From the sequence record MK250028.1: a stretch of DNA of 64,000 nucleotides; one strand, given 5' to 3'. The notes beneath the pieces were generated by a model. It had not been told where the DNA came from. It worked only from the letters and a program-made list of their open reading frames with translations, and made no database searches. A program made the position numbers and the translations under genes. Shown here piece by piece: positions 15,419 to 51,961 of the stretch (the first letter of the stretch is position 1; each line of letters begins with the position of its first letter).

Positions 15419-15424
15419 ATATAG

Positions 15425-15498
15425 CAGGCCTGATGAGATTCGAACTCACAACAACATGATTAAAAATTCGTGTGCTCTACCAATTGAGCTACAGGCCC
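15425..15498 (-). tRNA. tRNA-Lys(TTT)-like with 8-nt anticodon loop
   Basis: GGGCCTG/CAGGCCT acceptor, GCTC-AATTGGTA-GAGC D arm, CACGA-ATTTTTAA-TCATG anticodon arm, GTGAG-TTCGAAT-CTCAT T arm; no encoded CCA. Confidence 0.8.
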
Positions 15499-24570: not shown

Positions 24571-26778
24571 TTATTCATTTCTATTTATATTATATTTATC
24601 TAAAAGATAATTTGCAAAATCTTCTTTTTCCTATGTTTTATTATTAAATCTAAAAAAGAAATTAAGATTAAGACCTACTTTTCCACCTTGCAAATAATTA
24701 GTTGGCCAAAGTCTTACCATCTTATTCATTACATATTCCTCTATTGTCTTGAATCTATAATGATTTAACCTTGCGTTTTCCCATGTTTTTTCATTATCTC
24801 TTAATTTTATAGAATTTATACATAACTAACCTATTGTATTTACTGTAACTATTTTTTTACTATATGGCGAATCATATAAAATGCCATGAGGTGAATTAAA
24901 TTCTATATTATCTACACATGTTTTAAATATTATTTTAGTTTGAGTAGACCAATTTTCTGTAATAGGTAGATAATCTGTAAATCTTTTAATTGAATAATTA
25001 TTATCTTCTACTTTTAATATTTCTGAATCTGTAAACTATCTCCAGCAAACTCTTATTGTATTAATTCCTCTATCATTAAACATATCATTAGATAAAAATT
25101 CATGTATATCATTACAATCTAATTCTAAAAATTCATCAATATCGAAATATGCGATCCAATCATATTTGTCTTTGTATATATTATAGCAATCTGTATATGA
25201 TGGAATCTAAACCAATTCTTTCCCTCTCTAATCTTTTAATATTACATATCCAGAATTTATATAATCAGATATTACATCTTCAAAATGTTCGCCATCAATA
25301 TCATTGTTATCATATAAAACAATATTATCAAATCCTATTGATTTATGATGTTCAACAAATTCTCTTATATAATTATTTTCCATTTTTCCTATACAGCATA
25401 ATAAGATCTTTCCTGTATATTTTTTAGGTTTATTATATAAATTCAAATGATTTAATTTTACTGGGCATACATCAATTAATTTCTACAAATCAATATCATA
25501 TGTTGAATCATAGTTATTCTTTAATTTCAATAAATCATCTTCTGTTGTTTCTTCTGTTACTAAATATGAATCATATAATGGTTTATGAATAGATAAAAAG
25601 AAATCTTCGAATTTAAAGTCCTATCCTATATTTTTACCTATACTAATCCATATATTTGGAATCCTATATGCTTCTGAAATAATCAACCCATGTAAACTTT
25701 CTGAAACAATAAATTCACATTCTTCTATATTTTTTATTATATCTTTCCAATCATTATATTTTGTAAAATCTATTATTAATATATCATCATTATCTTTAAA
25801 TTTATTTAATATATATGATTTAATATGTGAATGATGCGGAATAATTCCCAACTTATATTTTTTCATTACATATGGTTGATAATAATATGGAAATAATAAT
25901 GCTGGATCCCCATAAACTTTTGGGCAATTTATATTTAATTCCTATAAGTAATCCCTTGTTTTGGGACCTCTCACTGCATATATTTTATTTGGTTTATTTT
26001 TTAAATTATGTTTATATAAGAAACCACTCCCCCATATTTTTGTAAAATCATCTATATATTCATCACATAAAATAGAGCCTATGAATATATAATTTATTTT
26101 CTTATCTTTCTTATTATATTTTTTATGTTGTTTACCTGTAAGTTCTTTTAAAAAAGAAAAATTTATATCATCACCAAAGTTATGTGGTATTACTGTATTA
26201 TCAGAATTTAAAAATGCCCAACTATTTAAATATATAGTATCATTCTCGTTCTTCATAATTTCGCTATTTAATTCTTTTTGAAATAATGAATTCGAAGTAT
26301 TATTTTTCTTCAATACATTTACAACTTCAGTATTAATTTTATTTTCTTTTTCCTTTTTTATTTTATCTTTAAACTATTTACTATTAATAATAACATTTTT
26401 ATTTTTAATAATATCCTATTTCTCTTTAAGAATTTCCTAAATTGGTTTTACTTTAGACTCAATAGTAGGTATCATGATATTGGAAACATAAGCATACGTT
26501 TCCTTATTTGTTTTTATATTGTTAATATTAATTTTTGTATTATTTCCTTTATGTTCTTTTTCTTTATTATCATAATTAACAAATGTTTTCATATTAGGTT
26601 TCGTAACATTACCTAATATGTACTTATCAGGATTATATGTACCTTGTAACTAATTTATATTATTAGTCACTGATGAGAATCCGTCCTAATTATAATAAAC
26701 ACCAGAATTCTAGGCGTAACTTCTATTTTTTGAAAAATATGCTTTATCTATCTTCTATACATTTTTAATTGGAAACAT
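24571..26778 (-). CDS. Polysaccharide pyruvyltransferase + GT2/GT92-like glycosyltransferase fusion
   Basis: 735 aa under code 15 (about 15 TAG); NFGDD, WGSG, AVRGPKT, GDPALL, SESLHG; then ENNYIREFVEHH..GFDNIVLYDNND and YDWIAYFDIDEF. Confidence 0.8.
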
Positions 26779-26902: not shown

Positions 26903-28162
26903 TTACTTATTCACTGCAAGAATTGCACATGAACTATTAACAAGAAGATTTACATTTCCCTTAAATTCATTAATAGTTCTCTTATCTGTATAACTCATTG
27001 CAGATCGCATATAATCAATCATATTATCAGTCCACTGTTTTACAGTTTCCTTCACTGTAATATACTTTGTACAACCTTCTGAAGTCTTTGTTTTTGCAGA
27101 TGGATTAATTAACTTTTGAGCCTTCTTTGTTGACATTCCATAAGACTCCTTTGTAATAGTCTTCATATCCTTAATAAAGTCTTTTTTCTGTTTTTCAAGT
27201 TCATCTGAAATAACAGGATTTTCAGAATTTAATCCTTCCCAAATATTAAGAATGTCTTCTACTCCATTATTAATAATACCATCTTTATAAAAATAAAGAT
27301 AATGATTATTATAACTTTCAATATTCAATGGTGCTGTTGACTCAAGAAGTCCTGTAAACAAACTTCCAATCATTACATAATCTGCACCAAGACCCAATGC
27401 TTTAATTACATCTGCATAACCACGAATACCACCATCTGCAACAAGGTAAGGATGTGACTTAAAATAACTTGTTGGATTATCATTTTCATCAAATCCCTTG
27501 TCAGCAATATTCTTATAATATTTACACTTATCAATCAATGATGCAATAGGATAATGAATTGAAGAATTTGAAGTAGTTAAACACACGGATCCGCTTCCTA
27601 TAGACAGTCTGATATAGTCCACGCGAGCATGCTTACAAATCCACTCATAAGTTTCAGGATTAGCGATATTACCTGTCATTACAATGAGTTTATAATTACT
27701 ATTATCAGCAATATCCTTTGCCTTATTAATAGTCTCATACAAACTTTCCATATGGCCATTTGCTAAATCCACACAAATCCTATATGTTCGATTATATCCA
27801 GAAAATATTTCATCAGGTGACATCATCTTATGATCAACAAAAACATATTCAAACTCTTTCAATGACAATGCAACCCAATCGCCATCATCCATAAATGGTT
27901 TAATATATTCCATACGTTTTACAATATCACCATTTGGATCTGCTCCTATATTTCGTGGAATCATTGGATGAATCTTATTCAACTTCCAAATGTTAATATT
28001 ATATTCATTCGTAATAGTAGACATAGGTGCAGTAAACAGTGGAAGATACTTATCATCTTCCACAAATGGATTACATTCCTTTCTACTCTTAATTGAACTA
28101 ATAACAGCAGGTTCAATTGTCAAATCATTATATGAATACTTTGTATCTTTAATAATCGGCAT
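26903..28162 (-). CDS. IMP dehydrogenase / GMP reductase family protein (no CBS domains)
   Basis: PLFTAPM, DLANGH, LSIGSGSVCLT catalytic loop, ADGGI..KALGLGADYVMIGS, YGMS, MRSAMSY. Confidence 0.9.
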   Translation of the reverse strand: MPIIKDTKYSYNDLTIEPAVISSIKSRKECNPFVEDDKYLPLFTAPMSTITNEYNINIWKLNKIHPMIPRNIGADPNGDIVKRMEYIKPFMDDGDWVALSLKEFEYVFVDHKMMSPDEIFSGYNRTYRICVDLANGHMESLYETINKAKDIADNSNYKLIVMTGNIANPETYEWICKHARVDYIRLSIGSGSVCLTTSNSSIHYPIASLIDKCKYYKNIADKGFDENDNPTSYFKSHPYLVADGGIRGYADVIKALGLGADYVMIGSLFTGLLESTAPLNIESYNNHYLYFYKDGIINNGVEDILNIWEGLNSENPVISDELEKQKKDFIKDMKTITKESYGMSTKKAQKLINPSAKTKTSEGCTKYITVKETVKQWTDNMIDYMRSAMSYTDKRTINEFKGNVNLLVNSSCAILAVNK

Positions 28163-28198
28163 TTTTATTCTTTTATTATTTCTAAATATTATATATAA

Positions 28199-28402
28199 TT
28201 AAATACTCTTTGTCTTATTAATTACCATTGTAATAAAATCATGTCTCTCTACATAATCCTTACTCTGACAATCATGTTTTACCAACAGATATGCATCGAT
28301 AACTTTCTCTATAAAATCATGATCGTATCGTTTTTCAAGTCCTTCTTCAAAACCTGTTTCATATCCATTATTATATTCTTCTTGCAAATCTTTTTCTGTC
28401 AT
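28199..28402 (-). CDS. Hypothetical protein
   Basis: 67 aa ORF. Confidence 0.55.
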   Translation of the reverse strand: MTEKDLQEEYNNGYETGFEEGLEKRYDHDFIEKVIDAYLLVKHDCQSKDYVERHDFITMVINKTKSI

Positions 28403-28425
28403 AATTATATTACTGTTTTATTTTA

Positions 28426-28971
28426 TTACCAAAATACAATAGGACTATCACTTTGATTAGTAACCAATAATCTTCTATTAGTTGGACAAGATGGATAATC
28501 ACTCAATCGATGAACACCGCCTACCATCATTCTTCTAGAATCTGAACATCCATAATGTGGTTGACAAAAATCATAATGAATACGAATAAACTTAAAATCA
28601 TCATTAACTTCTACTGATGTAATAGACAATGAATCAATATTAATATAGTGAGAATTTTCAATATTATTATTCAAACTATTATTATGCATCTTAATCCATT
28701 CCATATCATTCTTAATAGCCGAAGTTAAATCAATACTCAAAAATACAGAATATGTATCTACAATCTCTGGAGATTCATGGTCTGCTTCTGTAAAGAAATC
28801 AAGAAATACTCGTTTATCGATTATATCACCTTTCTTATATTCATCACGCATTGTAGCTACATGATCAATAACTAAATCACTCTTATTCTTTGATTTATTT
28901 GAGTCTCCATGTTCATCTACCCATTTGATATACATGCCTCCTCTATTCTTAGGATAAAAAACTTTTGTCAT
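28426..28971 (-). CDS. Hypothetical protein
   Basis: 181 aa ORF. Confidence 0.65.
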   Translation of the reverse strand: MTKVFYPKNRGGMYIKWVDEHGDSNKSKNKSDLVIDHVATMRDEYKKGDIIDKRVFLDFFTEADHESPEIVDTYSVFLSIDLTSAIKNDMEWIKMHNNSLNNNIENSHYINIDSLSITSVEVNDDFKFIRIHYDFCQPHYGCSDSRRMMVGGVHRLSDYPSCPTNRRLLVTNQSDSPIVFW

Positions 28972-28981
28972 AATTTTTATT

Positions 28982-29158
28982 TTAATCAGTTATATATTTT
29001 GCTTTATAAGTTTTATAATTATTAATAATATTAATCCATTCTTCTTTTGTAAGTCCAGTTATTTCACAACCTTTTTTATAATCAAACATATTAATTTCTC
29101 CAGACATTTGAAGATGATAATATGCATCAAATTTCTCTTCTGTAATTTCTACTTTCAT
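28982..29158 (-). CDS. Small protein, DUF5049-like
   Basis: 58 aa MKVEITEEKFDAYYHLQMSGEINMFDY..GLTKEEW..I..NY; SG..NMFD motif; not in ORF track. Confidence 0.55.
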   Translation of the reverse strand: MKVEITEEKFDAYYHLQMSGEINMFDYKKGCEITGLTKEEWINIINNYKTYKAKYITD

Positions 29159-29170
29159 ATATTAATTATA

Positions 29171-29587
29171 TTATTTGTTATTATTAATCATATCAATAAG
29201 TTTACCGACATTATCATAAAGTGTTCCCAACTCATAAAATGCCATAAATTGATTTGATACTTTATGATATGTAGGATTACATACATTTATATCAATGAAC
29301 AGATTTTCACAAAGGTTTGAAATATACATTGATTTCTTATCTTTCTTCTTCGATATTTTTTCAGCTAATGGTTTCAATCGAGAATTTGCAAACTTAATTA
29401 CGTCATTATAATAATTTACAATGCCCTGTTCATACTCATAATCTGATACATATACAGTATTCTTATTTAATGTAAGAACATAATAATCAGAACACATATC
29501 AGATGTTCGTGTTACATGTAATTTATTATCTGCATTTGCAATTACACACATGAATGAAAGAACCAATGTTATAAATATATGTTTCAT
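29171..29587 (-). CDS. Hypothetical exported protein
   Basis: Signal-peptide-like N-terminus; class I promoter at 29625. Confidence 0.65.
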   Translation of the reverse strand: MKHIFITLVLSFMCVIANADNKLHVTRTSDMCSDYYVLTLNKNTVYVSDYEYEQGIVNYYNDVIKFANSRLKPLAEKISKKKDKKSMYISNLCENLFIDINVCNPTYHKVSNQFMAFYELGTLYDNVGKLIDMINNNK

Positions 29588-29656
29588 TTTATATTATTTT
29601 AAATTATTGTTTTAATTAACAATACAAAGATACATATTTTATTTTGAATAAAAAAA

Positions 29657-29920
29657 TTAATATGAAATTATTTTACTAATTTGTGAACAATATCCAAACC
29701 ATTCTTTACCTTTATATATAACACAGAAATCTCCATTTATATTAAGAACTCGTTGACCAGCAGAATTAAATACTGCTATAATTTCGCAATCGACAAAACC
29801 TTTATCACCTCTATCTTCGTTCATTAAATGAATATTAATAATAGTTCCAACACGAATATCTCGTATAGTGAAATGCTTTTTATCAATATCGTCTTTATTA
29901 TTTTTATTAAACTTAATCAT
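29657..29920 (-). CDS. Hypothetical protein
   Basis: 87 aa; class I promoter at 29947. Confidence 0.6.
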   Translation of the reverse strand: MIKFNKNNKDDIDKKHFTIRDIRVGTIINIHLMNEDRGDKGFVDCEIIAVFNSAGQRVLNINGDFCVIYKGKEWFGYCSQISKIISY

Positions 29921-30043
29921 ATATTATTTTATTAATGTTTATATAACAAAGATACATATAATTTTATAAAAAAGAAAAAGAGATACTATAAAAATACAGT
30001 ATCTCTTTAAATTAAATTATTAATTAAACTTTCTAAAAACTTA

Positions 30044-31087
30044 TTACTTTACAGTAACAATAGCAACACGACCAAAATCATCATCCATACCATGACCTGT
30101 AGCATCAGTTACCTTAACACCACGAGACTCAAGATACTTCTTAACTGCTGTTGCACGAGCATCAGACAATGCCTTATTATGCTTCTTAGTACTCTTAGGT
30201 TCCTGAGATGCATAAGCGTCTACAACTACAGTTGTTCCTTCAGGAATTGCATCAAGTACGGACTTACACTTTGCACTCAAATTTGAGCTATTAAACTTAA
30301 ATGGTGCAACAAATACATTCTGTGCAAAACCACTTGCATTTGTAACAGGTTTCTCTACAATCTTCTCAATTACCTGTGGCTCACGAGACTCAAGTTCATT
30401 AATCTTTTTATTAAGAGCATCAACCTCTGTCTGATCATAAAGTTTTGCCTTTGCAAATGAACGTGTTCCATTTGAATTCTTGAAACGATAAACAACACCT
30501 GCAGTAATCTCAAAACTACCATTCTTCTTTACAAGCTTGCCATTATCAATATCATTCCATACAACAGAAGGATTTACGACAATACCCCATGCACGCTCCT
30601 TACCAAGATTAAAATTAAACTCTGCACCAGCACGATAAGTCATCCAGTTATTATGATCTGCACCATAACCTGCTGTCTGATGACCCCAACCAAGACCTGT
30701 ATAAACAACAGGTTCAAAGAACTTACGTGTTCCATCAAACTTAAATACATTAGCAAGATTTACCTTACCATAACCACTTACATTTACATAATCAAATGCA
30801 GTGTATGTATTATAACTACCATGACCTGTTCCAATAAGTGTACGACCTTCAATACCAAATCCCAACCATGGTGTTACATACTTATCTGCACCAACTACAA
30901 TAATAGGTGCCATTGCTGTATGACCACTATAGAAATTGTCAAATGATGTAAGAACACCACCCTGAAGTGTTACTGAAACATTATCAGTAAACTTACTAGA
31001 ACCTGCATAATCATTCTGTACCTGTGCATTAATTGTACCAATTGCAAATGTAAACATTGCAATCAACATAAAAATAAACTTCTTCAT
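30044..31087 (-). CDS. ompA: OmpA-family outer membrane protein (Bacteroidota type)
   Basis: Signal peptide, beta-barrel-like N-domain, C-terminal OmpA domain AYAS..HNKALSDARATAVKKYLESRGV; no TAG. Confidence 0.9.
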   Translation of the reverse strand: MKKFIFMLIAMFTFAIGTINAQVQNDYAGSSKFTDNVSVTLQGGVLTSFDNFYSGHTAMAPIIVVGADKYVTPWLGFGIEGRTLIGTGHGSYNTYTAFDYVNVSGYGKVNLANVFKFDGTRKFFEPVVYTGLGWGHQTAGYGADHNNWMTYRAGAEFNFNLGKERAWGIVVNPSVVWNDIDNGKLVKKNGSFEITAGVVYRFKNSNGTRSFAKAKLYDQTEVDALNKKINELESREPQVIEKIVEKPVTNASGFAQNVFVAPFKFNSSNLSAKCKSVLDAIPEGTTVVVDAYASQEPKSTKKHNKALSDARATAVKKYLESRGVKVTDATGHGMDDDFGRVAIVTVK

Positions 31088-31233
31088 AGTTTTTCTTTTA
31101 ATTTAAAATTTGTTATTAACTAAAAAATTATTTGTTTAAAATATTTGATTTATTAAAAATCATTATCATAATAATATATAATAAACTTCTTAAAAAGTTT
31201 ACATTTTATAAAAATAAACTTCTTCATAGTTTT
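31068..31233 (-). repeat. 26-nt direct repeat of the ompA start region
   Basis: AAAACTATGAAGAAGTTTATTTTTAT at 31068-31093 (ompA start) and 31208-31233 (immediately 3' of the TnpB omegaRNA). Confidence 0.9.
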
Positions 31234-31350
31234 AGTTTTTATTTATACTAAAAACCTATATTTCTTGTTTCATAAATACATTATATATTAAATTTATATA
31301 TAATTCATATCTCCACAAGCTTAAATTCGGTAAAACTCAACCCTATTTAA
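31234..31350 (-). ncRNA. TnpB omegaRNA scaffold / IS right end, copy 1 (shortened)
   Basis: TAGGGTTGAG..CCGAATTT..GCTTGTGGAG..ATGAAACAAGAAA plus terminal hairpin GGTTTTTA/TAAAAACT, conserved with copy 2. Confidence 0.65.
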
Positions 31351-31362
31351 TATTTTAAATAA

Positions 31363-32496
31363 TTATAAATTAATTTGTCTTAATCCTTCTGATAAAATAT
31401 TCAAAGAAGCATTATAATCTCTATCTATTAAAGATTTACAATGTGGACATATCCACTTGCGCTAACTTAGTTTTAAATCTTTATAAATATATCCACAATT
31501 ATGACATGTCTTTGATGAAGGATAGAATCTATCTATTATAACTAAATTTTTATTATACCTATTACACTTATATTCAAGTTGTCGTCTGAACTCAAATAAA
31601 CTTAATTCCTATATGGACTTAGATAGTTTATGATTAGACATCATACCATTTACATTTAAATCTTCAATACAGATAACTTGGTTCTCATTAACTAGTTTTG
31701 AAGTTATTTGATGTAAATAATTTAATCTCTAATTCTTTATTTTCTCATGAACTTTTGCAATTTTAACTCTTACTTTATTTCTATTAATACTGTCTTTCTA
31801 TTTCTTAAATAATTGCCTCTATAATTTCTTTAATTTATTTTCTTGATTTTTATAAAAATGCTTATTCTCATATCTATTTCCATTTGAATCAACAATAAAA
31901 TCTTTAATTCCTAAATCTAATCCTATTACATTATCTAACTTTTCTTTTTCTTTAATATTATAATCAATACATATTGATAGATAATATTTGTTTGTAGAAG
32001 TTTTAGTAAGAGTAACAAAATGAATTTTATCTTGATTATGATTTAAATATATTTCATCTTTTCTTGAACACTTAAATAATATATTTTTTAACTACTTTAT
32101 TAAAGTTATTCTATTTCCTCTAATTTTTTTATTTTTAAACTTAAACATTGAATTAGTAAATCTGCAAGATTGTTTAGCATCTTTTTTAGATTTGAATTTA
32201 GGATAATATGTATATGATTTTAAAAAATTATCATATGCTTTAATTACATCTATCATTGATTGCTATAAACATGCATTATATACATCATTTAAAAAAGAAT
32301 ATTCATCTTGCTTCCTTAAAGAAACTAAATATTTACCTAACTATGATAAAGAAACAGATTGCTTATATTGTTTATATATTAATTTTTTATAATCTAATAA
32401 TTTATTATATATAAATCTACAACAACCTAATTGTTTAGAAATAAATTCTTTCTAAGCAACATCAGGATATATTCTTATTTTAATAGATTTGATCAT
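31363..32496 (-). CDS. tnpB: IS200/IS605-family RNA-guided endonuclease TnpB, intact, no tnpA
   Basis: 377 aa under code 15 (8 TAG); HTH N-terminus, RuvC D (GLDLG), E (IEDL), D (DRDYNA), Zn ribbon CHNC/CPHC. Confidence 0.9.
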
Positions 32497-32565
32497 ATAC
32501 AATAAAATTATTTATATAATATAAAATTAACTTCTTAAAAAGTTTACATTTTATAGAAATATTTT

Positions 32566-33234
32566 TCAAATTGGTTTTGGACAAAGTTTAACTAACTTAC
32601 TTCTCAACGAATTTAATATAGGTTTAAACTTAGTTTTATATTCATCCCAATTATTACCCATCATTTGAATCTTTATCCAATATGAATTTGCTTCACTATA
32701 ATCATATATCTTTCCATATTCTGCAATTTGAATACCAAACATATATAATCTTATACAATGAAAAATAGATTTTTTTGCTCTATATAAATCATAATCTTTT
32801 TCTATAATTAATTTCTTATGACATTTTGCATATGAGTTATTAACAATAGAAGAAATAACTTTCCTTAATTTCCATTTATCAAGAATGAAATAATTCGCGT
32901 ATAACGAGTTAAATTTTTCAAAACTATCATACATACTACTTTTCATAAATAAGCTCTCTAACGCGATTATATGATGTTCATATAGCATCTTTTTAAATGT
33001 ATTATTATTGATAATCTGAAAATCAAAATCAATAGCATTTCCATCAAATACATGAAGTTCCGTTATACCATTATAATCATCTGTTAATTTAATATCATCA
33101 TCTACAATAACAATAATATCCTTATCTGATTTTTCATTATTAGTTCCATATACATAAGATCCATGCATAAAAGATAATATATAATGTTCACGTATATTTA
33201 ATGGTAAACATTCCTTTATAAGTTTCCAATCCAT
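32566..33234 (-). CDS. Pol-beta superfamily nucleotidyltransferase
   Basis: MHGSYVYGTNNEKSDKDII motif. Confidence 0.75.
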   Translation of the reverse strand: MDWKLIKECLPLNIREHYILSFMHGSYVYGTNNEKSDKDIIVIVDDDIKLTDDYNGITELHVFDGNAIDFDFQIINNNTFKKMLYEHHIIALESLFMKSSMYDSFEKFNSLYANYFILDKWKLRKVISSIVNNSYAKCHKKLIIEKDYDLYRAKKSIFHCIRLYMFGIQIAEYGKIYDYSEANSYWIKIQMMGNNWDEYKTKFKPILNSLRSKLVKLCPKPI

Positions 33235-33237
33235 AAA

Positions 33238-33660
33238 TCATTCAACTAAATCATATTCTAACTTATGAAATATTATTCTCTTTTCCTTTAAAAGTTTATC
33301 CAATAATTCATTAAAATCAAATTTAACGGTAGTTAATGAATCATATACTAAATTTGGTACTTTATATAATTTGAATAATTGCTCAAAATTCGCAATTATA
33401 CCATTATAAAGTTTTTTCTCTGATGTATATGTATGTTTACCTTTATAATTAAGAATAAGTTTACCATCTAATGTAGCATACCACATATATTTCTTCTTAT
33501 TATTCTTATTAATTAAAGGCTTTGTTATTTGATCAAAAAATGAATCATCTATATCTATCTCATCATTTAACTCTATTTTATTATCATGGTTAAAATCAAT
33601 ACGTTTCTCAATATTAATCTTTACTTTCATTTTATTATCTTTGTATTTAAAAGAACACAT
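33238..33660 (-). CDS. Hypothetical protein
   Basis: ORF in operon; start uncertain. Confidence 0.6.
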   Translation of the reverse strand: MCSFKYKDNKMKVKINIEKRIDFNHDNKIELNDEIDIDDSFFDQITKPLINKNNKKKYMWYATLDGKLILNYKGKHTYTSEKKLYNGIIANFEQLFKLYKVPNLVYDSLTTVKFDFNELLDKLLKEKRIIFHKLEYDLVE

Positions 33661-34010
33661 GGTTTACCGATATAAAAAACACCAGGAATTTCCTTAAATT
33701 CTTTCATTAGTTTTTTAGTTTCACGTTTTAATTTATTCAAATATGTTTTATATGCTTTCTCCCTGTTATGGTCTATCCATGCATCATAATAATCTTGTCT
33801 AGAAAAATCTTCACGCTTTTTATCATACCATTCTATATCAGTAAACTTATTAATGTATATTTCTATCGCTTCTTCTATAGAATTAGCTGATATATGATAA
33901 GTTTCAGTTATTACTTTAACATCATCTTCATAATCGTCTTCTTCTATAGATATGTCTGTATAACAAAATATCTTTAATGTATTATTTTGATTTTTAAACT
34001 TTACGCTCAT
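33627..34010 (-). CDS. Hypothetical protein
   Basis: 127 aa ORF. Confidence 0.6.
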   Translation of the reverse strand: MSVKFKNQNNTLKIFCYTDISIEEDDYEDDVKVITETYHISANSIEEAIEIYINKFTDIEWYDKKREDFSRQDYYDAWIDHNREKAYKTYLNKLKRETKKLMKEFKEIPGVFYIGKPCVLLNTKIIK

Positions 34011-34121
34011 TTATAATATTAATTAGTTATACTCTTTATATGTAATATAAAATAAAAAAGTCTTAACATATTATAATAATATAATACATTAAGACTAAAA
34101 ACTTAAAAATAACATGAAAAA

Positions 34122-34646
34122 TTATTTCTTATTATTACAATTAACAATAACCTTATTATATACATCTAATAATATATTATCATTATTAAATGCTATATCT
34201 ATATCAGATGTAAAAATCATTGATAATGGAATAAACATTATATCATCAACTTCATTAGGTTCAGAATGTTCACTTGTTAATTCATAATCATCTATTATTC
34301 CTGGAAGAATTGCATAATAAATTACGCTTACATTCTGTCGCTTTGTATCTGGAATTGAATTAATGGCATAAAAATTCATCAATACTCTTGGGATAGAAAT
34401 ACCTGTTTCTTCAAAGGTCTCTCTCATTCCACATTGACACAAATCCTCATCATGATCCAAATAACCAGCTGGAACATTCCACCTTCCTACATTTGATGGA
34501 CATCCTTTACCACGTTTATTAATTAATGCACACCAATTTCCATCTGAATCTTTACAGAATACACAAGTCGCAACAGTTATTGAACGAGAATACCAATATT
34601 TTTCACCGTTATATTCAAACTCAAAATTTCGTAATCTCTGTTTCAT
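34122..34646 (-). CDS. NUDIX hydrolase
   Basis: Nudix box GYLDHDEDLCQCGMRETFEETGI. Confidence 0.9.
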   Translation of the reverse strand: MKQRLRNFEFEYNGEKYWYSRSITVATCVFCKDSDGNWCALINKRGKGCPSNVGRWNVPAGYLDHDEDLCQCGMRETFEETGISIPRVLMNFYAINSIPDTKRQNVSVIYYAILPGIIDDYELTSEHSEPNEVDDIMFIPLSMIFTSDIDIAFNNDNILLDVYNKVIVNCNNKK

Positions 34647-39648: not shown

Positions 39649-40209
39649 ATGGATAAGAATACATTAAAAAAACAGATGAACCAAATTCATGATATAAATT
39701 TATCAAAGCGAATTGGTGAAGTTTGTGAGTGTCCAGTATGTGGCAATTCTTTCGTTAAGAAACATATTAAACATGTTTATTGTGGAGGACGTGATAATCA
39801 GATATGTAAGAATGCTTATAATAATTTCATGCGTTATAATACTGTTTATGATTTTGGGAGATTTGTTAATTTGAAAAATAAAAATAATAATGTCACTACT
39901 AAATCAACAAAATCATTTAATAAGTATATGTCTTTTTCATTTGGCAATGATTCTTCATTATCAGATAAGTCGAATAAAGAGTTAAATGAAGTTAAAGATA
40001 CTTCTAAACATGTTAGTAAAACTTTAAGTGTAGATAAACAAGTATTAAAGAATATTGAGTCTTCATTAGAAACTCGTATTAGAGAAAAAATTGAAAAAGA
40101 GTTTGAATATGAATATAAGAATAAATTAGAGAAAGAATATAATAAAGCATGTGCTAACTATGAAGAAGCAAAAAAATGGGAAAATGCCGAATTTAATGGT
40201 TGTGTTTAA
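39649..40209 (+). CDS. Zn-finger-containing hypothetical protein
   Basis: CPVCG..YCGG..C; class I promoter at 39613. Confidence 0.65.
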   Translation: MDKNTLKKQMNQIHDINLSKRIGEVCECPVCGNSFVKKHIKHVYCGGRDNQICKNAYNNFMRYNTVYDFGRFVNLKNKNNNVTTKSTKSFNKYMSFSFGNDSSLSDKSNKELNEVKDTSKHVSKTLSVDKQVLKNIESSLETRIREKIEKEFEYEYKNKLEKEYNKACANYEEAKKWENAEFNGCV

Positions 40210-40219
40210 ATAATGATGT

Positions 40220-40522
40220 ATGTTGTTATTTTATAGATTTGATGATATTCCAAAAAATGAGAGGTCTTCAATTTTTTGGAGAGGCGAAGAAAAAATAGGT
40301 GAAGAAAAAGGAGTATCTGTTTATGAAGCTCATAAAAATATAAATGGAACATATTCACCAGTTTTACCTAATCCTATAAATGAAACAGGGTTTGATACTT
40401 TTATTCATTTAATTAGATATTATTCCGGTAACAAATATTTGGTAACAGGAGATTTATTAGATGACAGAGGAACAGATGGTGAACCATTAATTAAGAACGT
40501 TAAAATAATTAAGAAGTTATGA
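40220..40522 (+). CDS. Hypothetical protein
   Basis: 100 aa in operon. Confidence 0.65.
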   Translation: MLLFYRFDDIPKNERSSIFWRGEEKIGEEKGVSVYEAHKNINGTYSPVLPNPINETGFDTFIHLIRYYSGNKYLVTGDLLDDRGTDGEPLIKNVKIIKKL

Positions 40523-40746
40523 ATAAAGAAGAACGTTATAAGAAGATAAATGATTTGATTCCACAAATCGAGTTAATTAAAGATACTATTTATAATATCG
40601 TATGGGAACCTCAGGAAGGTGATTTTGATAATCATTTCGACAATCTTCCAAAAGCAGAGAAGGTTGCTATCATAGGAATATTGAATGATGCAAATAGACT
40701 TAGTAATTCAGTTGCATGTTATGCACATTGGTTTGAACAAAAGTAA
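40519..40746 (+). CDS. Hypothetical protein
   Basis: 75 aa, ATGA overlap. Confidence 0.6.
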   Translation: MNKEERYKKINDLIPQIELIKDTIYNIVWEPQEGDFDNHFDNLPKAEKVAIIGILNDANRLSNSVACYAHWFEQK

Positions 40747-40803
40747 ACATTTTCAATAATTTAGACTATAATTTATAGATTTGTTGTTAATTAGATAAAG
40801 TTT

Positions 40804-41544
40804 ATGAAAAATAATAAAGAAATTGTTAAGGAATTTTATCCATATGTAAGTGATGCTCTTAAGAAAATGGATAATGTTGATATAGAAACATTGCAGAATA
40901 TATATAATATTCTTAGTAATATGAATGATTATTCTGTTGATGAAGTTATTAATGCGCAAAAAATAGTTAAAGATATTATTAATAAAACTATTGATGAGTT
41001 TAAAGATAAATTTATTAAGAATGTTTCATTTGATGATATTATTTTATATGCACAGGTATCAAAATCTGTATTGAAAAATAATAATACAAAGAAGAATTTT
41101 TTTAATAATATTGGTGTAACTATTGATACAAAAAATATAGTAGGAACTAAATCATTTGAAGCTATTCAACATGATTTGTTTGGTGGTGAACCAACTGTAT
41201 ATAAGAAGAAAAAGAAGTTTTCAAAAATTAATGATAAAGTTACACTTTATTCAAATATTCCTTATTTAACTCTTAAGAAAAATGAGCATTTATATCGTAT
41301 AGCTACACTTATTCCTTATAATAAGCAAGTAGTAGATGATAATGGTAAGAAAATAAAGGGATTAATCTATGGAATGCTTCCAACTATGTATTTTGTAACA
41401 GATAATAAGAAACGAGATTTTAGAATTGCTCGTAATAATTATATTAATATTGTAAGGTCTCAGAATGAAAAGTTGGTTAAGCATTATGAAGAAACTTACA
41501 ATATTACGTTAGGTTATGATGTTTCAGCTAAAATGATTAAGTAA
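40804..41544 (+). CDS. Hypothetical protein
   Basis: 246 aa ORF. Confidence 0.7.
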   Translation: MKNNKEIVKEFYPYVSDALKKMDNVDIETLQNIYNILSNMNDYSVDEVINAQKIVKDIINKTIDEFKDKFIKNVSFDDIILYAQVSKSVLKNNNTKKNFFNNIGVTIDTKNIVGTKSFEAIQHDLFGGEPTVYKKKKKFSKINDKVTLYSNIPYLTLKKNEHLYRIATLIPYNKQVVDDNGKKIKGLIYGMLPTMYFVTDNKKRDFRIARNNYINIVRSQNEKLVKHYEETYNITLGYDVSAKMIK

Positions 41545-41546
41545 TT

Positions 41547-42101
41547 ATGGTAGCAACTTATATAGCATTTACATTTTTTGTATGTTTAGTATTATTATGT
41601 TTTACTATAATACTTTTTATATGTATATCAGTATATGATAATATTGTACAATATAATGATCCAGGTCCATTTAAGAAATGGTTTTCAAGAATTATAATTT
41701 TTATTATATGCTATTTTTTTATAAATTGGACACATTATTTAATGTTTAAACCTATACGATTTATAAGTAGTGATGAACCTGTTTTAATAACAGGAAATAA
41801 TGCTACATATAGATATTATAATTATTTTCAAACAGATTCTGATGATGTAATTGTACATAAACCGATCTATATGAAAGGTATAATATATAAGGATAAAGTA
41901 TCTAATTGTAGTGATAATGATAATAATGTTAATCATCATGATATTTGTATAAAGTCAGAAGATGGCAAACATATTGAAGAAGATTATCATTATAATCCTC
42001 AAATAGAAGATTTACCTTTTGAAGAATATAAGAAACGTGTAGGATTTAAAAAGGTATTTTTTCCAGAGGAACGATATTATTTAATTTATTTTAGCAAATA
42101 A
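41547..42101 (+). CDS. Hypothetical membrane protein
   Basis: Two N-terminal TM segments. Confidence 0.65.
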   Translation: MVATYIAFTFFVCLVLLCFTIILFICISVYDNIVQYNDPGPFKKWFSRIIIFIICYFFINWTHYLMFKPIRFISSDEPVLITGNNATYRYYNYFQTDSDDVIVHKPIYMKGIIYKDKVSNCSDNDNNVNHHDICIKSEDGKHIEEDYHYNPQIEDLPFEEYKKRVGFKKVFFPEERYYLIYFSK

Positions 42102-42107
42102 AAGTTT

Positions 42108-42482
42108 ATGATGAATATATTTTTGATATTACATTTTGTACCAGTAATTGTAGGATTATATATTTTTTATATAATACCTTATTTTACATTGAAAAAGAAT
42201 TCGTCATTATATGATTATTTTAATAATTTGGAATTTATATCAATTCCATCTTTAACTATATTAACAATAGTACCAATATTTAATTATATTATATTGTTTA
42301 AGTTAGTTGAAGAGTATAGTAATGATTCTGAAAAAGAAGAATGTTTAAATCAAACAGTATCTAATATATATGATTTCTTTAAAGAATTTTTTACAGCTTT
42401 ATGGATGTTATTTGTATGGTTGTTTGGTCTTAAGTATGTATTTAGATTTTTTAATAAAATATTAACACTTAAAATAAAGTAA
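42108..42482 (+). CDS. Hypothetical membrane protein
   Basis: Three hydrophobic segments. Confidence 0.6.
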   Translation: MMNIFLILHFVPVIVGLYIFYIIPYFTLKKNSSLYDYFNNLEFISIPSLTILTIVPIFNYIILFKLVEEYSNDSEKEECLNQTVSNIYDFFKEFFTALWMLFVWLFGLKYVFRFFNKILTLKIK

Positions 42483-42488
42483 TTAAAA

Positions 42489-42761
42489 ATGGAATTAACA
42501 AAGGAATATCTTTTAGATCATGGATATGAAACAAATCATCCTGATCGTGTTTTGTGTCGTTTTTATAAGACTAATAATGAATCTCCTGAGTGGCGAGTTA
42601 GTGTAGAACAGGAATATTTTCCATTGAGTAATAAACTTACATTCAATATTAATTGTTGGAAGTGTAATGAGAGTGGTGCTATTATTAAGCGTTCTTCCAT
42701 AGGATATGCTACAACAGTTGAAGAGTTGAATAATGTTATTGCTCTATGTGGAATCGAGTAA
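42489..42761 (+). CDS. Hypothetical protein
   Basis: 90 aa ORF. Confidence 0.6.
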   Translation: MELTKEYLLDHGYETNHPDRVLCRFYKTNNESPEWRVSVEQEYFPLSNKLTFNINCWKCNESGAIIKRSSIGYATTVEELNNVIALCGIE

Positions 42762-43582
42762 TATTTAATATAAAGAATTTATGGTTTTGGTATTTAATAA
42801 ATTATTATACCAGAACCTATTTCAATAATTTAAAGAATATGATGGTTAAACCGTATATTAAAGAAGATAGAAAATTAACAGCTAAGAATCATATAGAAGA
42901 AATGGAAAATTCTTTTCATCCTATGATTCAAACTTCTATTAGAGATTCTGTTGTATATACAGAGGATGATAATGTTTTAGATAAAAGAAATATTATTGTA
43001 GAAGATATAAAGACAGAAGATGCAGTTTTTAAGTATGGAGAAGATAAACATTTATGTGTATTGAATTTTTCAAGCTATAAATATCCTGGTGGAGGTTTCA
43101 TTAAAGGTGCGATAGCTCAAGAAGAAGCATTATGTCATGCAAGTGATTTATATAATGTAATCTCCGATAAAAAATTTAATACATATTATGAACATAATCG
43201 ACAAAATACTAATGGCGGATTATATAAGAATTTTGCTATCTATTCTCCAAATATTATTTTTAATAGAGTTGCTGATAATTTTATTTCTGTAGATGTAATT
43301 ACATGTCCAGCACCAAATCTTTCACATTATGAAGGACATATTTATTATGCGATGAAAGCTATGAATGATAGAATAAAATTTATTCTTGATATTGCAGAGA
43401 AACATAAACAAAAGAATTTGGTTCTTGGTGCATTTGGATGCGGAGTATTTAAGAATGATCCTCAATTTGTTGCTGAAGTATTTAAGGAATTATTGGGATC
43501 TTCTAAATATCATTTTGAAGCCATTATATTCGCAATACCGGGAGGAATTAATTATAAGAAATTTAAAGAAGTTTTTTCTTAA
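42746..43582 (+). CDS. TIGR02452/DUF2263 macrodomain protein (microbial PARG-like)
   Basis: VLNFSSYKYPGGGFIKGAIAQEEALCHAS, IYSP, ITCPAPN, LVLGAFGCGVFKN. Confidence 0.9.
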   Translation: MWNRVIFNIKNLWFWYLINYYTRTYFNNLKNMMVKPYIKEDRKLTAKNHIEEMENSFHPMIQTSIRDSVVYTEDDNVLDKRNIIVEDIKTEDAVFKYGEDKHLCVLNFSSYKYPGGGFIKGAIAQEEALCHASDLYNVISDKKFNTYYEHNRQNTNGGLYKNFAIYSPNIIFNRVADNFISVDVITCPAPNLSHYEGHIYYAMKAMNDRIKFILDIAEKHKQKNLVLGAFGCGVFKNDPQFVAEVFKELLGSSKYHFEAIIFAIPGGINYKKFKEVFS

Positions 43583-43657
43583 ATATTTTTTTATTTAAAA
43601 TAAAATATGTATCTTTGTATTGTTAATAAAATAATGAACAATTAAAATAACGAAGAT

Positions 43658-43879
43658 ATGAATAAGTCTCTTAAAATACAAATAACACTTCTTGTGGTTA
43701 TTCTTACAGTAGGAATAATTATAGTTAACAACATTAAATCTAATGTTAACTATATTAATGAACCTTGTCCTCTTTGTGGTTCATCTGAGGTTCTTGATTT
43801 TGGTTATGATAATATGAATGGTCAAGAACATGCTCATTGTGTTACTTGTGAAAGAGACTTCTACATTGATGTAGATTAA
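43658..43879 (+). CDS. Membrane-anchored Zn-ribbon protein
   Basis: TM segment, CPLCG..CVTC; class I promoter at 43610. Confidence 0.65.
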   Translation: MNKSLKIQITLLVVILTVGIIIVNNIKSNVNYINEPCPLCGSSEVLDFGYDNMNGQEHAHCVTCERDFYIDVD

Positions 43880-43990
43880 AAAGTTCCTACTGTTTTTTTA
43901 TAATGGTTAAAGAGTATTAGAGAATATTCTTTAACCATTTTTTATATATAAAATAAACTAATATCTAATTATTTAATATAAAATATAGAG

Positions 43991-44314
43991 ATGATAAATT
44001 TTAAAAAGAAACATGTTGAACGGACATATTTTTCTGTTATAATGTCATGGGTATATACAGGATATAAATATGATTCTGTTTCTGATGCAACAAATAATTT
44101 AAGAAAAGCAATAGAATATATAGAAAACAATAAATCTGATTTATATTTTGATGAAATTATATCATCTGGATTAGGCTCAATAGCATCAGGAAATTATACA
44201 GATACTATTATTAGACCATATCTTATAGTAAGGAGAAATTATTGGGATGATATGTTTAAAACAGAACATGAAAAAAATATATATAAACAAATAATAAATT
44301 TAACAATACCTTAA
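43991..44314 (+). CDS. Hypothetical protein
   Basis: 107 aa ORF. Confidence 0.6.
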   Translation: MINFKKKHVERTYFSVIMSWVYTGYKYDSVSDATNNLRKAIEYIENNKSDLYFDEIISSGLGSIASGNYTDTIIRPYLIVRRNYWDDMFKTEHEKNIYKQIINLTIP

Positions 44315-44558: not shown

Positions 44559-44768
44559 TTAATTATAGAAAATATTTTTCATTTAAAAAATAATTTAGAT
44601 AAATAATATAAGAAATAAGTTTAATAACTTTGGTAGGTTGGTTTAAACTATTTTTATAATTTGAATATAATATATAATTAAAGATATTTATAGATCGTTT
44701 ATATTAATAATTTGTATCAACCTACCAATTTTATACAAATTAAAATATAAACGATTTTTTATTATATT

Positions 44769-45902
44769 ATGTTAAAGTCTATTAAAATACGAATATATCC
44801 TGATAATGTTTAGAAAGAATTTATTTCTAAACAGTTAGGTTGTTGTCGATTTATATATAATAAATTATTGTATTATAAGAAGTCATAGTATGAGTAGAAT
44901 AAACAATCTGTTTCTTTATCACAGTTAGGTAAATATTTAACTAATTTAAAGAAACTAAATGAATATTCTTTTTTAAATGATGTTTATTCTTAGTGTTTAT
45001 AGCAATCAATGTAGGATATGATTAAAGCATATGATAATTTCTTTAAATTACATAATGGTTATCCTAAATTTAAATCAAAGAAAGATACTAAACAAACATG
45101 TAGATTTACAAATACTATATTTAAATTTAAGAAAAAGAAAATTAATGGTAATAGGATAACATTAATTAAATAGTTATAGAATATATTATTTAAATGTTCA
45201 AAAAGAGATGAAATATATTTAAATCATAATCAGGATAAAATCCATTTTATTACTCTTACTAAAACATCTACTGAAAAATATTATCTATCTATTTGTATTG
45301 AGTATAATATTTATAAAAAAGAAAAGTTAGATACAGTAATAGGTCTTGATTTAGGTATTAAAGACTTTATAGTAGATTCTAATGGAAATAGATATGAGAA
45401 TAAACATTTTTATAAAAACCAATAAAAGAAATTAAAGAAATTATAGAGGTTGTTAAGTAAGAAATAGAAAGGAAGTAATAATAGAAATAAAGTTAGAATT
45501 AAATTAGCTAACGTTTATGAAAAAATAGCTAATCAAAGAAGCACATATTTACATCAAATTAGTTCAAAATTAGTTAACGAGAACCAAGTTATCTGTATTG
45601 AAGATTTAAATGTAAATGGTATGATGTCTAATCATAAATTAGCTAAATCTATATAGGACTTAAGTTTCTATGAATTTAGACGTTAGTTAGAATATAAATG
45701 TAGATAGAATGGAAGACAATTAATGATTATAGATAGATTTTATCCTTCTTCTAAAACATGTCACAATTGTGGATATATTTATAAAAGTTTAAAATTAAAT
45801 GAACGCGACTGGATATGTCCACATTGTAGATCTCTAATAGATAGAGATTATAATGCTTCATTAAATATTTTAACTGAAGGATTAAGACAAATTAATTTAT
45901 AA
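44769..45902 (+). pseudogene. tnpB: TnpB copy 2, interrupted by one TAA
   Basis: Same 1134-nt length as copy 1; 13 TAG; TAA at 45423-45425 where copy 1 has GAA; RuvC residues present. Confidence 0.85.
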
Positions 45903-45916
45903 TTTATATAAAATAT

Positions 45917-46061
45917 TAAATAGGGTTGAGTTTACCCGAATTTACGCTTGCGGAGATACCAACTATGGATGAAAGAAATTACATTCATGTAATTATACTA
46001 AAAAGTAGTGTGTCTATGAAACAAGAAACACAGGTTTTTAAAATTAATTGAAAACAAAACT
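45917..46061 (+). ncRNA. TnpB omegaRNA scaffold / right end, copy 2 (longer)
   Basis: Conserved blocks with copy 1; terminal hairpin GTTTTTAA/TTGAAAAC, then AAAACT and the ATG of the next gene. Confidence 0.7.
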
Positions 46062-46532
46062 ATGAGTTTGTACAAATATCCAAGTATACATGGTTTGAAG
46101 GATATTGCAATGATTTATAATGATTCTGAATGGGATAATGCAAAACTTAAAGTGTGGGATCCTGAATATCAAAGAGAATATAATATATCATTTACAGGTT
46201 CTACAAGACCAACTGAAACTGAACCAGGTATAGTAAGTTTCAATATATCAAAAGTAAAAGACGAAAAATCTGCTGATGAAAAATCAATAGATATTTATTT
46301 AGATAAAAGATTTCCTAATATATCTAAATTAGAGAGAAACAAATATGAATTGATTTTTAGAGCAGGTGTTGAATATGGAAAGAATGTAAGTAAAAAAGAT
46401 TTACTTAAAGAATTATTTAAATCACCATGTGAAAAATGTGGTAGTTATATGATGTCAGATAATTGTATTTGTAATAAATTATATAACTATTGTGATTTTA
46501 TAGAAGAAGTAAAGGAAAGGATAGAGAAATAA
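46062..46532 (+). CDS. Hypothetical protein
   Basis: 156 aa; ATG directly abuts the omegaRNA end. Confidence 0.65.
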   Translation: MSLYKYPSIHGLKDIAMIYNDSEWDNAKLKVWDPEYQREYNISFTGSTRPTETEPGIVSFNISKVKDEKSADEKSIDIYLDKRFPNISKLERNKYELIFRAGVEYGKNVSKKDLLKELFKSPCEKCGSYMMSDNCICNKLYNYCDFIEEVKERIEK

Positions 46533-46557
46533 GAATCTCTATCCTTTATTATTTTAT

Positions 46558-47130
46558 TTAATATTCATCATCGTCATCCCATTCATCATCTGAATCATCA
46601 TAATCTTCCTCTTCATCATCAAAATTAGAATCAGAAAGATAAATTTCTTCTATAACTACTTGATTAACTTTGAATACCATAAGTCCTTCTGAAAATTCAA
46701 GTTCAATATCAATTTCACCATCTTCATTTGCAGGGAATATTTGAATACTTTCATCTTGTTTTAATTCAATTTCAGGTTTACAATAGGCAATATCAAAAAT
46801 ACCTATTGTACCAGAATCTACATCATATTTTTGATTTGTCATAGAATCATATGTACCATCGCCATATTGAGTTCCTTGAATAATACCTATAACTTCCTCA
46901 TCATTTTCAAGAATTCCATCAGGATATTTCTTTGCACCCCATACATTATCATAAATATCTTCTGTTAAACAATAACATGGATCACCAATAACAAGTGATT
47001 CTACATTTGTTAATGTTACATAATAACGTCCACTTGTTTGTGTATATTTCTCATTAATTGATTTCTTTACAGATTTTGATACTGATTTCATTATACTTTC
47101 ATATAATGATTTCTTTTGTTTATTATTCAT
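46558..47130 (-). CDS. Leader-bearing hypothetical protein (GDPCY family, DUF4241-like)
   Basis: N-terminus KKSLYESIMKSVSKSVKKSINE; LVIGDPCY, YGDGTY, VDSGTIG; acidic tail. Confidence 0.7.
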   Translation of the reverse strand: MNNKQKKSLYESIMKSVSKSVKKSINEKYTQTSGRYYVTLTNVESLVIGDPCYCLTEDIYDNVWGAKKYPDGILENDEEVIGIIQGTQYGDGTYDSMTNQKYDVDSGTIGIFDIAYCKPEIELKQDESIQIFPANEDGEIDIELEFSEGLMVFKVNQVVIEEIYLSDSNFDDEEEDYDDSDDEWDDDDEY

Positions 47131-47160
47131 AATGTTATGTAAATTAAAAAAATTATTTTT

Positions 47161-47170
47161 AGTATTTATC
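47161..47170 (-). promoter_or_regulatory. Class III (T4-late-like) promoter ATAAATA
   Basis: ATAAATA about 25-45 nt upstream of ATGs at 13357, 15915, 19812, 21777, 24459, 26778, 35853, 47130, 50861, 54147, 62428. Confidence 0.65.
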
Positions 47171-47245
47171 TTTTAACAAAGATACATAAAATTTTTTAAA
47201 TAAAAAAGAGATGTAATTTAATTATTACATCTCTTAAATTATTAA

Positions 47246-47548
47246 TTATCCATCATATCCGTATTTACCGAATACATGAACAATTTCACCGCTTTTAGTT
47301 GTATAAGATTTATCATAAGATTCTAGATCATAATCACCGAAGTAATCATCATATGATTTATATCTCCAGCTATCTTCTGTAATATCTTCCTCTGATATAG
47401 AATCTTTTGAAACTAATTTATTATGATCTCTATCAAGAACATATGTTCCATTTTTCCATCCATTATATTCATCATCTGATGCAAATGTCAATGAATGTGT
47501 AGAACTTGAGTTAGTTTCAAATACACTTTTCCTTACTTGAATTTTCAT
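47246..47548 (-). CDS. FETNSSSTH-motif protein D
   Basis: MKIQVRKSVFETNSSSTHSL. Confidence 0.8.
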   Translation of the reverse strand: MKIQVRKSVFETNSSSTHSLTFASDDEYNGWKNGTYVLDRDHNKLVSKDSISEEDITEDSWRYKSYDDYFGDYDLESYDKSYTTKSGEIVHVFGKYGYDG

Positions 47549-47566
47549 TATATATTATTATATATT

Positions 47567-48130: not shown

Positions 48131-48154
48131 TTTATTTTATAAAATTAATAATTA

Positions 48155-49320: not shown

Positions 49321-49343
49321 AATTTTCCTATTGTTTTATATTA

Positions 49344-50228: not shown

Positions 50229-50358
50229 AATTTCTTTATTTTAAAAAATTAATAAATTTAAATTTAATATCACGAAGATACATATTTTGTTTATATATAA
50301 AAAAGAAAAATAGAGAATATCTAACATTAATTAGTAAATATTCTCTATTTTTAAAAAT

Positions 50359-50861: not shown

Positions 50862-51006
50862 AATTTTACATAAATTAAATTTTATTTTTATATTTATATG
50901 ATGATATACAATGTAAATTTATAATAAATAATACATTAAATAAGACATTTTTATAATTATAGAATATTTAATAATAGGTAAGGTAGAATATTAAAAGATT
51001 TAAATT

Positions 51007-51611: not shown

Positions 51612-51639
51612 TAAATATTTAAAGACTTAGTAATTAACG

Positions 51640-51903: not shown

Positions 51904-51961
51904 TTAAACTATTTCCTTTTTTCTTTATATAATAATATATGTAAAAATAGAATTATTTAAA

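Follow-up and report, generated by a model that had tools for sequence, protein, structure and literature searches.

A left-end-truncated TnpB-omegaRNA cassette beside ompA in Lak-B megaphages, with a copy of the ompA start in its guide position

The ompA locus of Lak-B1

The DNA analysed here is a 64-kb stretch of sequence record MK250028.1, called the window below, which comes from the Prevotella megaphage Lak-B1 and has a G+C content of 26%. On its minus strand, a tnpB gene and its omegaRNA stand upstream of an ompA-like gene, and the sequence in the guide position of this omegaRNA is a copy of the ompA start. Reading along this strand, one meets the stop codon of a nucleotidyltransferase-like gene (32566-32568), a first copy of a conserved intergenic block (P', 32555 to 32529), 32 nt, tnpB, the omegaRNA with its terminal hairpin, a single T (31234), the copy of the ompA start (S', 31233 to 31208), the second copy of the block (P, 31210 to 31184, overlapping S'), the native ompA leader (U) and the real ompA start (S).

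Both repeats had been noticed in an earlier sequence-only reading of the window, and both are exact. The 26-mer ATAAAAATAAACTTCTTCATAGTTTT occurs exactly twice in the window, at S (31068-31093, minus strand; on the gene strand AAAACT, the ATG at 31087 and the next 17 nt) and, 140 nt away, at S' (31208-31233, minus strand). Such a match is non-random, as none was found in 100 shuffles, even with up to 3 mismatches allowed. The 27-mer AACTTCTTAAAAAGTTTACATTTTATA likewise has exactly two occurrences (31184-31210 and 32529-32555, zero expected by chance), one on either side of the cassette, and local alignment extends this repeat to 33 nt with one mismatch (TATTT[C/T]TAT followed by the 27-nt block). 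Its downstream copy covers 31184-31216 of the minus strand, i.e. P, the putative ompA promoter, together with TATTTTTAT, which gives a 9-nt overlap with S'. Its upstream copy (32529-32561, minus strand) begins 5 nt past the stop of the preceding gene, and is collinear with the single block of Lak-A. The 33-nt repeat begins with 9 nt (TATTTTTAT versus TATTTCTAT) that also form the end of S', and this makes the S'/P junction a microhomology junction, located ∼17 nt inside the ompA coding sequence. The ATG of S' opens only a 24-codon open reading frame (ORF; MKKFIFIKCKLFKKFIIYYYDNDF, 31208-31135, minus strand) running through P; it is probably meaningless and, if translated, would span the putative promoter.

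The 27-nt block had been described as a promoter. Its duplication holds, and a related block is found in Lak-A too; as a sigma-70-type promoter scan stayed at the level of chance and shuffles, and as its 12-nt core is not a common motif in the window, the word promoter is kept here as a putative label only.

A chance similarity, or an artefact of assembly or curation, deserves consideration in DNA so rich in A+T, coming from genomes that were assembled from metagenomes. It can practically be dismissed: besides the shuffles, which gave no match even at three mismatches, the same structure is present in nine GenBank genomes, three IMG/VR contigs, one JGI/ENA metagenome contig and 24 ENA contigs, the latter being carriers of an identical OmpA from separate samples. 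The cassette is identical in every one of these Lak-B-type assemblies. Over the window segment 29000-35000, identity is 100% with Lak-B1, B5 and B9, and 99.5-99.6% with the remaining Lak-B genomes. No single-nucleotide polymorphism (SNP) separates the nine Lak-B strains between 30675 and 33754, while the neighbouring genes are variable. With Lak-A1, A2 and C1, identity drops to ∼82% and covers 54% of the query, in separate pieces.

Lak-A1, A2 and C1, together with three IMG/VR relatives, made up the cassette-free comparison set. The comparison of alleles with and without the cassette, which the sequence-only reading had suggested, thus gave a clear result: the cassette is fixed in Lak-B and absent from Lak-A, Lak-C and the other relatives. 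In all six cassette-free alleles, one related block, at ∼96 nt from the ompA ATG, is followed by the leader and ompA. The 90-nt leader U of Lak-B1, from the block to the start (31094-31183, minus strand), is collinear with them except for its last ∼11 nt, AAAAGAAAAAC, which resemble the right-end tail of the element. Cassette-free ompA starts read ...AAATTTTTTAAAGTATGAAGAAGTTTATTTTTATGC: the 20 nt from the ATG on are those of S', so these alleles match the guide (ATG plus 17 nt) exactly, whereas their 5' flank differs (TAAAGT, not AAAACT). Put otherwise, the pre-start sequence is AAAACTATG at S in Lak-B and TAAAGTATG in the cassette-free relatives, with S reading AAAAGAAAAACTATG then AAGAAG..., and the Lak-A-type start ...TTTAAAGTATG AAGAAG....

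The two genes on either side of the cassette contain no TAG codon. The ompA-like gene (30044-31087, minus strand, taken from the ORF list) encodes 347 aa with a signal-peptide-like N-terminus (MKKFIFML) and a C-terminal OmpA domain, recognised by weak NCBIfam OmpA-like matches over residues 262-334, and by Pfam PF00691 on an identical ENA product. The nucleotidyltransferase-like gene (32566-33234, minus strand, 222 aa, weak Pfam Polbeta match) forms the left border of the insertion site.

TnpB, its omegaRNA and the ends of the element

The tnpB gene occupies 31366-32496 of the minus strand. TAG is read as an amino acid in Lak phages (PMC6784885) and, with TAG taken as glutamine, the frame from 32496 to 31366 is open for 376 codons, nine of them TAG, with no internal TAA or TGA. 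The product matches NF040570 (guided_TnpB) with 310 bits for a cut-off of 100, and NF038281 (IS200_TnpB) with 361 bits, which is under the strict cut-off of 425; OrfB_IS605 and Cas12f1-like_TNB Pfam domains are recorded for an identical product. Its alignment with ISDra2 TnpB covers the full length (E=1e-55) and places D194, E278 and D360 opposite D191, E278 and D361, which confirms that the RuvC D-E-D triad is intact, as had been read from the translation. This triad and the CxxC..CxxC zinc finger, also intact, are invariant among ten Lak copies, and the ratio of nonsynonymous to synonymous substitution rates (dN/dS) is 0.15-0.25 in comparisons with ten other Lak copies. Among bacteria, the closest TnpBs reach at most 48% identity, save one 63% match on a 2-kb contig labelled as a Clostridium metagenome-assembled genome. 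We conclude that the tnpB gene is intact and under purifying selection.

The use of TAG is a mosaic in the window: blocks of genes with 4-15 in-frame TAG codons (e.g. 24571-26778 and 54147-56420) alternate with long TAG-free blocks (26903-34646, 39649-44314 and 46062-53208). With its nine TAG, tnpB is a TAG-rich gene amid the TAG-free gene run 26903-34646. The proposal that its expression is amber-gated is reasonable on these grounds, but such gating would not be particular to this copy, since every Lak TnpB copy has 7-17 TAG codons. Another stop was found in one copy only.

The window contains a second, full-length element, at 44560-46064 on the plus strand, whose protein is 80% identical. 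Its tnpB (44769-45902) has 13 TAG and one in-frame TAA (45426-45428), its omegaRNA (45915-46064) is complete, and its right end is directly adjacent to a 156-aa ORF whose ATG is at 46062. It is absent in Lak-B7 and B8, where the first 12 nt of the ORF at the empty site include two synonymous changes; the Lak-B7 empty allele has 17 differences over 2439 nt, and their clustering near the ATG has P∼0.008. With a complete omegaRNA next to an interrupted tnpB in this sister copy, the use of RNAs and proteins in trans within one genome is conceivable.

The omegaRNA scaffold of the ompA-side cassette (conserved part 31235-31347, minus strand, terminal hairpin 31256 to 31235) was delimited by an alignment of 11 copies, and by consensus and single-sequence folds. 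The scaffold is conserved in these 11 Lak copies and includes a basal long-range stem, which compensatory changes preserve (GATAC/GTGTC to GATAT/GTATT). The ompA-side copy keeps the 5' part, the basal stem and the terminal hairpin, and has a simple AT hairpin in place of the middle: CCAACTATGGATGA and CTAAAAAGTAG, both invariant in the ten other copies, are missing. Rfam, which contains no family against which this scaffold could be scored, gave chance-level matches only in scans of the two window copies, and no group I intron family.

The left end is missing too: only 32 nt (32497-32528, minus strand) lie between the upstream repeat copy and the tnpB ATG, without the structured left end of ∼175 nt found in full-length copies. 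In those copies, it consists of a motif shared with unrelated Lak genes and, after it, a long hairpin with a loop paired to an upstream segment. The hairpin, directly before the tnpB start (44630-44757, plus strand, in the second window element; ∼30-170 nt upstream of tnpB at loci L004-L021), has 7 compensatory pairs. Its loop pairs perfectly, over 8-12 nt, with a segment 72-90 nt upstream, and since seven different sequence pairs occur in nine copies, the left-end fold is a covarying pseudoknot, for which no Rfam match was found. The motif (TTTTTAAAAT)AATTTAGATAAATAATAT at the outer left end (44592-44617, plus strand) was rejected as an element-specific signal: it precedes unrelated genes as well, at loci L052-L062 of Lak-B7, A1, A2 and C1, and thus looks less like a transposon end than like a class of phage promoters. 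No common motif was found in the left flanks of the Lak copies.

As to mobility, the absence of tnpA that had been noted in the sequence-only reading stands for the 64-kb window, and an IS200-type Y1 TnpA is likewise absent from the four complete Lak genomes searched (Lak-B7, B3, A1 and C1). It does not extend to an unrelated IS607-type serine TnpA, which is encoded far away in Lak-B7, A1 and C1, and is missing from Lak-B3. These serine recombinases score 156-164 bits (cut-off 110) and contain 5-7 TAG codons. In Lak-B7 (MK250026.1, 515505-516053, locus L171), the gene is followed by a promoter-like motif and an ORF beginning MQVLKIKYQTDDQ, possibly an IS607-type TnpB. The same genome also carries a solo omegaRNA/right-end remnant of ∼145 nt (186826-186969, locus L045), 86% identical and devoid of tnpB, with the tail AAAACTAAG, not AAAACTATG.

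Several of these observations would suit a decaying relic, i.e. a dead remnant in which the match to ompA is inconsequential, and whose open frame reflects either recent decay or use in trans with other omegaRNAs. The cassette has neither the ∼175-nt left end nor two invariant blocks of the omegaRNA, the sister copy of the same window has its in-frame TAA, and the four genomes have no IS200-type TnpA. Against this, 376 codons without TAA or TGA have been kept in DNA of 74% A+T under a dN/dS of 0.15-0.25, the basal stem has been maintained through compensatory changes, and the cassette is invariant across nine Lak-B strains. We regard such a relic as unlikely.

Two side observations may be added. 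Sequencing runs were looked up as well: the best one contained 16% of the sampled words, and none was recorded as RNA. ARAGORN reports one odd tRNA-like gene in the window (15424-15498, minus strand) with a four-base anticodon, tttt. Introns have been reported in Lak tRNAs (PMC8346664), and this gene may be a mis-parsed intron-containing tRNA.

Docking on start codons and the flank of the ompA target

Many TnpB copies were found at different loci in IMG/VR and in complete Lak genomes. At seven independent loci, the downstream ATG lies 33-38 nt past a conserved GAAACAAGAAA box and 6-15 nt past the terminal hairpin, and the downstream ORFs (41-216 aa) encode unrelated proteins. The ATG of S', at offset 33 from the GAAACAAGAAA box, has the same position as in these seven loci. 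At four further loci, comparison with empty sites revealed the same start codons without the element. Locus-specific sequence begins 1-15 nt past the terminal hairpin in all copies, with a boundary uncertain by ∼10 nt. With a right end placed immediately ahead of a start codon, the guide is by construction the start region of the gene that follows. It is therefore normal for Lak TnpB elements to have such a gene start as guide, and as a default product this gives no evidence of a domesticated regulator.

This bears directly on the proposal, made in the sequence-only reading, that the cassette is a domesticated switch: upon late decoding of TAG as glutamine, TnpB would be made, its omegaRNA guide would pair with the ompA start, and ompA would be repressed or cut. 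Such a switch would fit a perfect 26-nt match to the ompA start only 140 nt away, nine TAG codons in a gene lying inside the TAG-free block, an exact copy of the ompA upstream block ahead of tnpB, and an arrangement that is fixed across Lak-B without variation in any strain, despite SNPs in the flanking genes; moreover, TnpB-derived repressors (TldR) exist (PMC10705468). However, the RuvC triad is intact, and binding over 17 or more matched bases would thus lead to cleavage of the genome that encodes it. The ompA site is preceded on its 5' side by a copy of the element's end tail, the very place that TnpB must not recognise. The guide matches the downstream gene start at seven other loci with unrelated genes, and no special targeting is needed to explain it. 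The omegaRNA lacks two blocks invariant in ten sister copies, and 7-17 TAG codons are the rule for Lak TnpB. With an arrangement that can be explained without regulation, we consider the switch very unlikely.

The recognition of targets by TnpB involves a 5' transposon-adjacent motif (TAM). In the work of Meers et al. (PMC10055086), the right-end boundary motif differs from the TAM at two positions, and single-base changes of the TAM abolish cleavage, hence the right-end/guide junction of an element is unrecognisable to its own nuclease. No TAM motif separating targets from right-end tails emerged from left-end flanks, five empty-site comparisons or duplicated targets; the candidate 5' flanks at empty sites (GTATG, AAATG, ACATG, TTATG and CAATG) were not separable from right-end tails. 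Nor could a TAM be borrowed from bacteria, given that the closest relatives there, the 63% match aside, are at most 48% identical.

What distinguishes the real ompA start of Lak-B is the sequence before it. AAAACTATG occurs three times in the 64 kb, at the two element right ends and at S only, and the tail (T)AAAACTATG closes the right end at three loci, namely the ompA-side cassette, the second window copy and, outside the window, L006. That AAAACTATG might be a general Lak start context was rejected, as 4 of 77 ORFs have C at -3, and the 9-mer is confined to S and the element ends. By manual count, 14 of the 17 nt upstream of the S ATG match right-end tails, versus 8 of 17 for cassette-free alleles. 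Whichever boundary is taken, the bases preceding the match at S resemble those of the element itself, and they are identical to them when the guide is assumed to begin at the ATG or close to it. The real ompA start thus looks, in its sequence, like "self" in the TAM position. The right-end tail is presumably not a TAM. In every Lak-B strain, S occurs together with a nuclease gene that is intact and under purifying selection, which argues that S is not a substrate.

Other Lak loci display duplicated targets. Three copies, the ompA-side one included, are flanked by direct repeats of 33, 54 and 55 nt. The 54-55-nt repeats, at L004 (2350-2404 and 3905-3960) and L012 (3939-3993 and 5283-5337), duplicate the 3' end of the upstream gene, and the differences checked at L004 are synonymous, which would suit an origin of the two copies from diverged alleles of one gene. 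Where a second target copy coexists with an element away from ompA, as at these loci, it differs by synonymous changes beside the right end. Target duplications are not produced by the peel-and-paste insertion of IS200/IS605 elements. Two deletion variants were also seen whose start coincides with the right-end boundary, one of 20 nt between ACAA repeats, with loss of the guide region and of the start codon, and another of 75 nt between AAAACTA(A)TG repeats (located at L015:5290 versus L034/L077, and at L005:5300 versus L006:5300-5375). Their appearance is that of microhomology repair in or close to the guide; they could have been left by self-cleavage.

Origin of the ompA arrangement and its place among known systems

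The reading towards which we incline, with a little more than even confidence, is that this left-end-truncated cassette is a scar, left by docking on the ompA start and a local duplication, rather than a purpose-built switch. It would be an immobilised TnpB-omegaRNA cassette of IS200/IS605 type, endemic to Lak megaphages, that once stood directly before ompA, so that its guide was the ompA start. A later local rearrangement would have inserted a second conserved block and the native leader between cassette and ompA, as a 140-bp duplication joined at the 9-nt microhomology TATTTTTAT/TATTTCTAT. By this event, ompA would have regained its normal upstream region, tnpB being left behind the other block copy. 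S' would then be the 26-nt stub of the old right-end/ompA junction, remaining as guide, and S a copy of the element's own non-cleavable right-end/guide junction. We infer this order of events. Since S carries AAAACTATG where the TAM would be read, the match would be tolerated rather than used. A homing or recombination scar, tolerated for want of a TAM, had been one of two options in the sequence-only reading; this option is supported by the empty sites in relatives, the 9-nt microhomology, the family norm and the element tail in the TAM position of S.

Several points weigh against this scar reading. After just one unequal crossover with a naive allele, S would read TAAAGTATG instead of AAAACTATG; extra steps, either a conversion or an earlier copy since deleted, are needed to account for the S tail. 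With a right-end/guide boundary uncertain by ∼10 nt, the identity of the flank is not absolute: a guide starting right after the hairpin would face AAAAG at S versus AAAAC in the element, one base different, and would have a mismatch with S at guide position 1. The perfect identities (26/26 and 27/27) could also reflect selection. When IMG/VR and JGI metagenome contigs were scanned, and the OmpA protein was looked up exactly in ENA/Logan contigs, the present arrangement alone came up, and not the intermediate allele in which the element abuts ompA without duplication; the path of events is thus reconstructed, not observed. Finally, no cassette-free Lak-B-like allele was found that would prove AAAACT to be element-derived rather than native to Lak-B. 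Two simpler histories were tried. An older duplication followed by drift, in which the 32-nt tnpB leader would be a diverged ompA leader U, was rejected, the alignment score being that of shuffles. No one-step path was found to explain all three junctions.

On the scar reading, the nuclease, if active, would presumably act on the cassette-free ompA alleles of co-infecting relatives and not on its own genome. An active role against such alleles is possible. A more ambitious version of this idea, which we hold only tentatively and at clearly less than even odds, is that Lak megaphages have their own lineage of RNA-guided homing or competition nucleases, transposase-independent, docking on start codons, expressed late through TAG gating, and directed against the same gene in co-infecting relatives. 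Self-protection would come from the end motif in the TAM position at ompA, and from a synonymously recoded target duplicate at two other loci; the ompA arrangement would be a fix, beneficial to the host, that keeps the weapon while restoring ompA expression.

Compared to the TnpB-omegaRNA systems of IS200/IS605 elements (ISDra2, PDB 8EXA/8BF8/8H1J; the Geobacillus ISGst homing model, PMC10055086), the Lak elements share full-length homology, the RuvC D-E-D and the zinc finger, a structured RNA at or after the tnpB 3' end with a variable flank directly past the right end, and the coexistence of occupied and empty alleles among relatives. They differ in residing in a 548-kb lytic megaphage, with 7-17 TAG=Q codons and no Y1 TnpA in the genomes, and in docking their right ends on downstream start codons. 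In contrast to the outcome of classical peel-and-paste insertion, target DNA is directly repeated over 10-55 nt on both sides of several copies, and the ompA-side copy has lost its left end and part of its omegaRNA. Like TldR (PMC10705468), it is a TnpB-family protein with a guide matching the 5' region of a nearby gene from a fixed position; but the RuvC triad and the C-terminus are intact, so the Lak-B TnpB is not TldR-like, the target flank mimics the element end and not a TAM, and the guide/target relation is explained by the position of insertion. With IStrons (PMC10690162), the cassette has in common a TnpB element inside a transcription unit, where gene expression and omegaRNA production conflict. 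Unlike them, Lak copies lack a group I intron, according to the Rfam scans, and the full-length left end is instead a hairpin-pseudoknot of ∼140 nt, itself missing from the ompA-side copy. Here, the conflict seems to be resolved by a duplication of the upstream region of the gene.

A last comparison is with phage genes, and it concerns the homing aspect of the Lak elements, which show sequence changes clustered at the target beside the insertion. The free-standing homing endonuclease genes of T4-like phages (seg/mob) are selfish nucleases located between phage genes, present or absent among relatives, and are similar in this clustering. Targeting in Lak would, however, be guided by RNA, and the duplication, which puts the cassette 140 nt from its presumed target, should weaken its copying by homing.

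A TnpB lineage adapted to TAG=Q, residing on gene starts and devoid of a matching transposase is not described in the Lak papers searched. It brings together half-megabase phages, empty and occupied alleles, synonymous changes adjacent to the target, and target duplications. The family also offers compact TnpB and omegaRNA variants, including a naturally shortened omegaRNA. Provided that the nucleases are active, RNA-guided homing between rival viruses could be studied in Lak phages as a natural system, and the same phages would show how a genome coexists with a nuclease that has a guide matching one of the genes of that genome.

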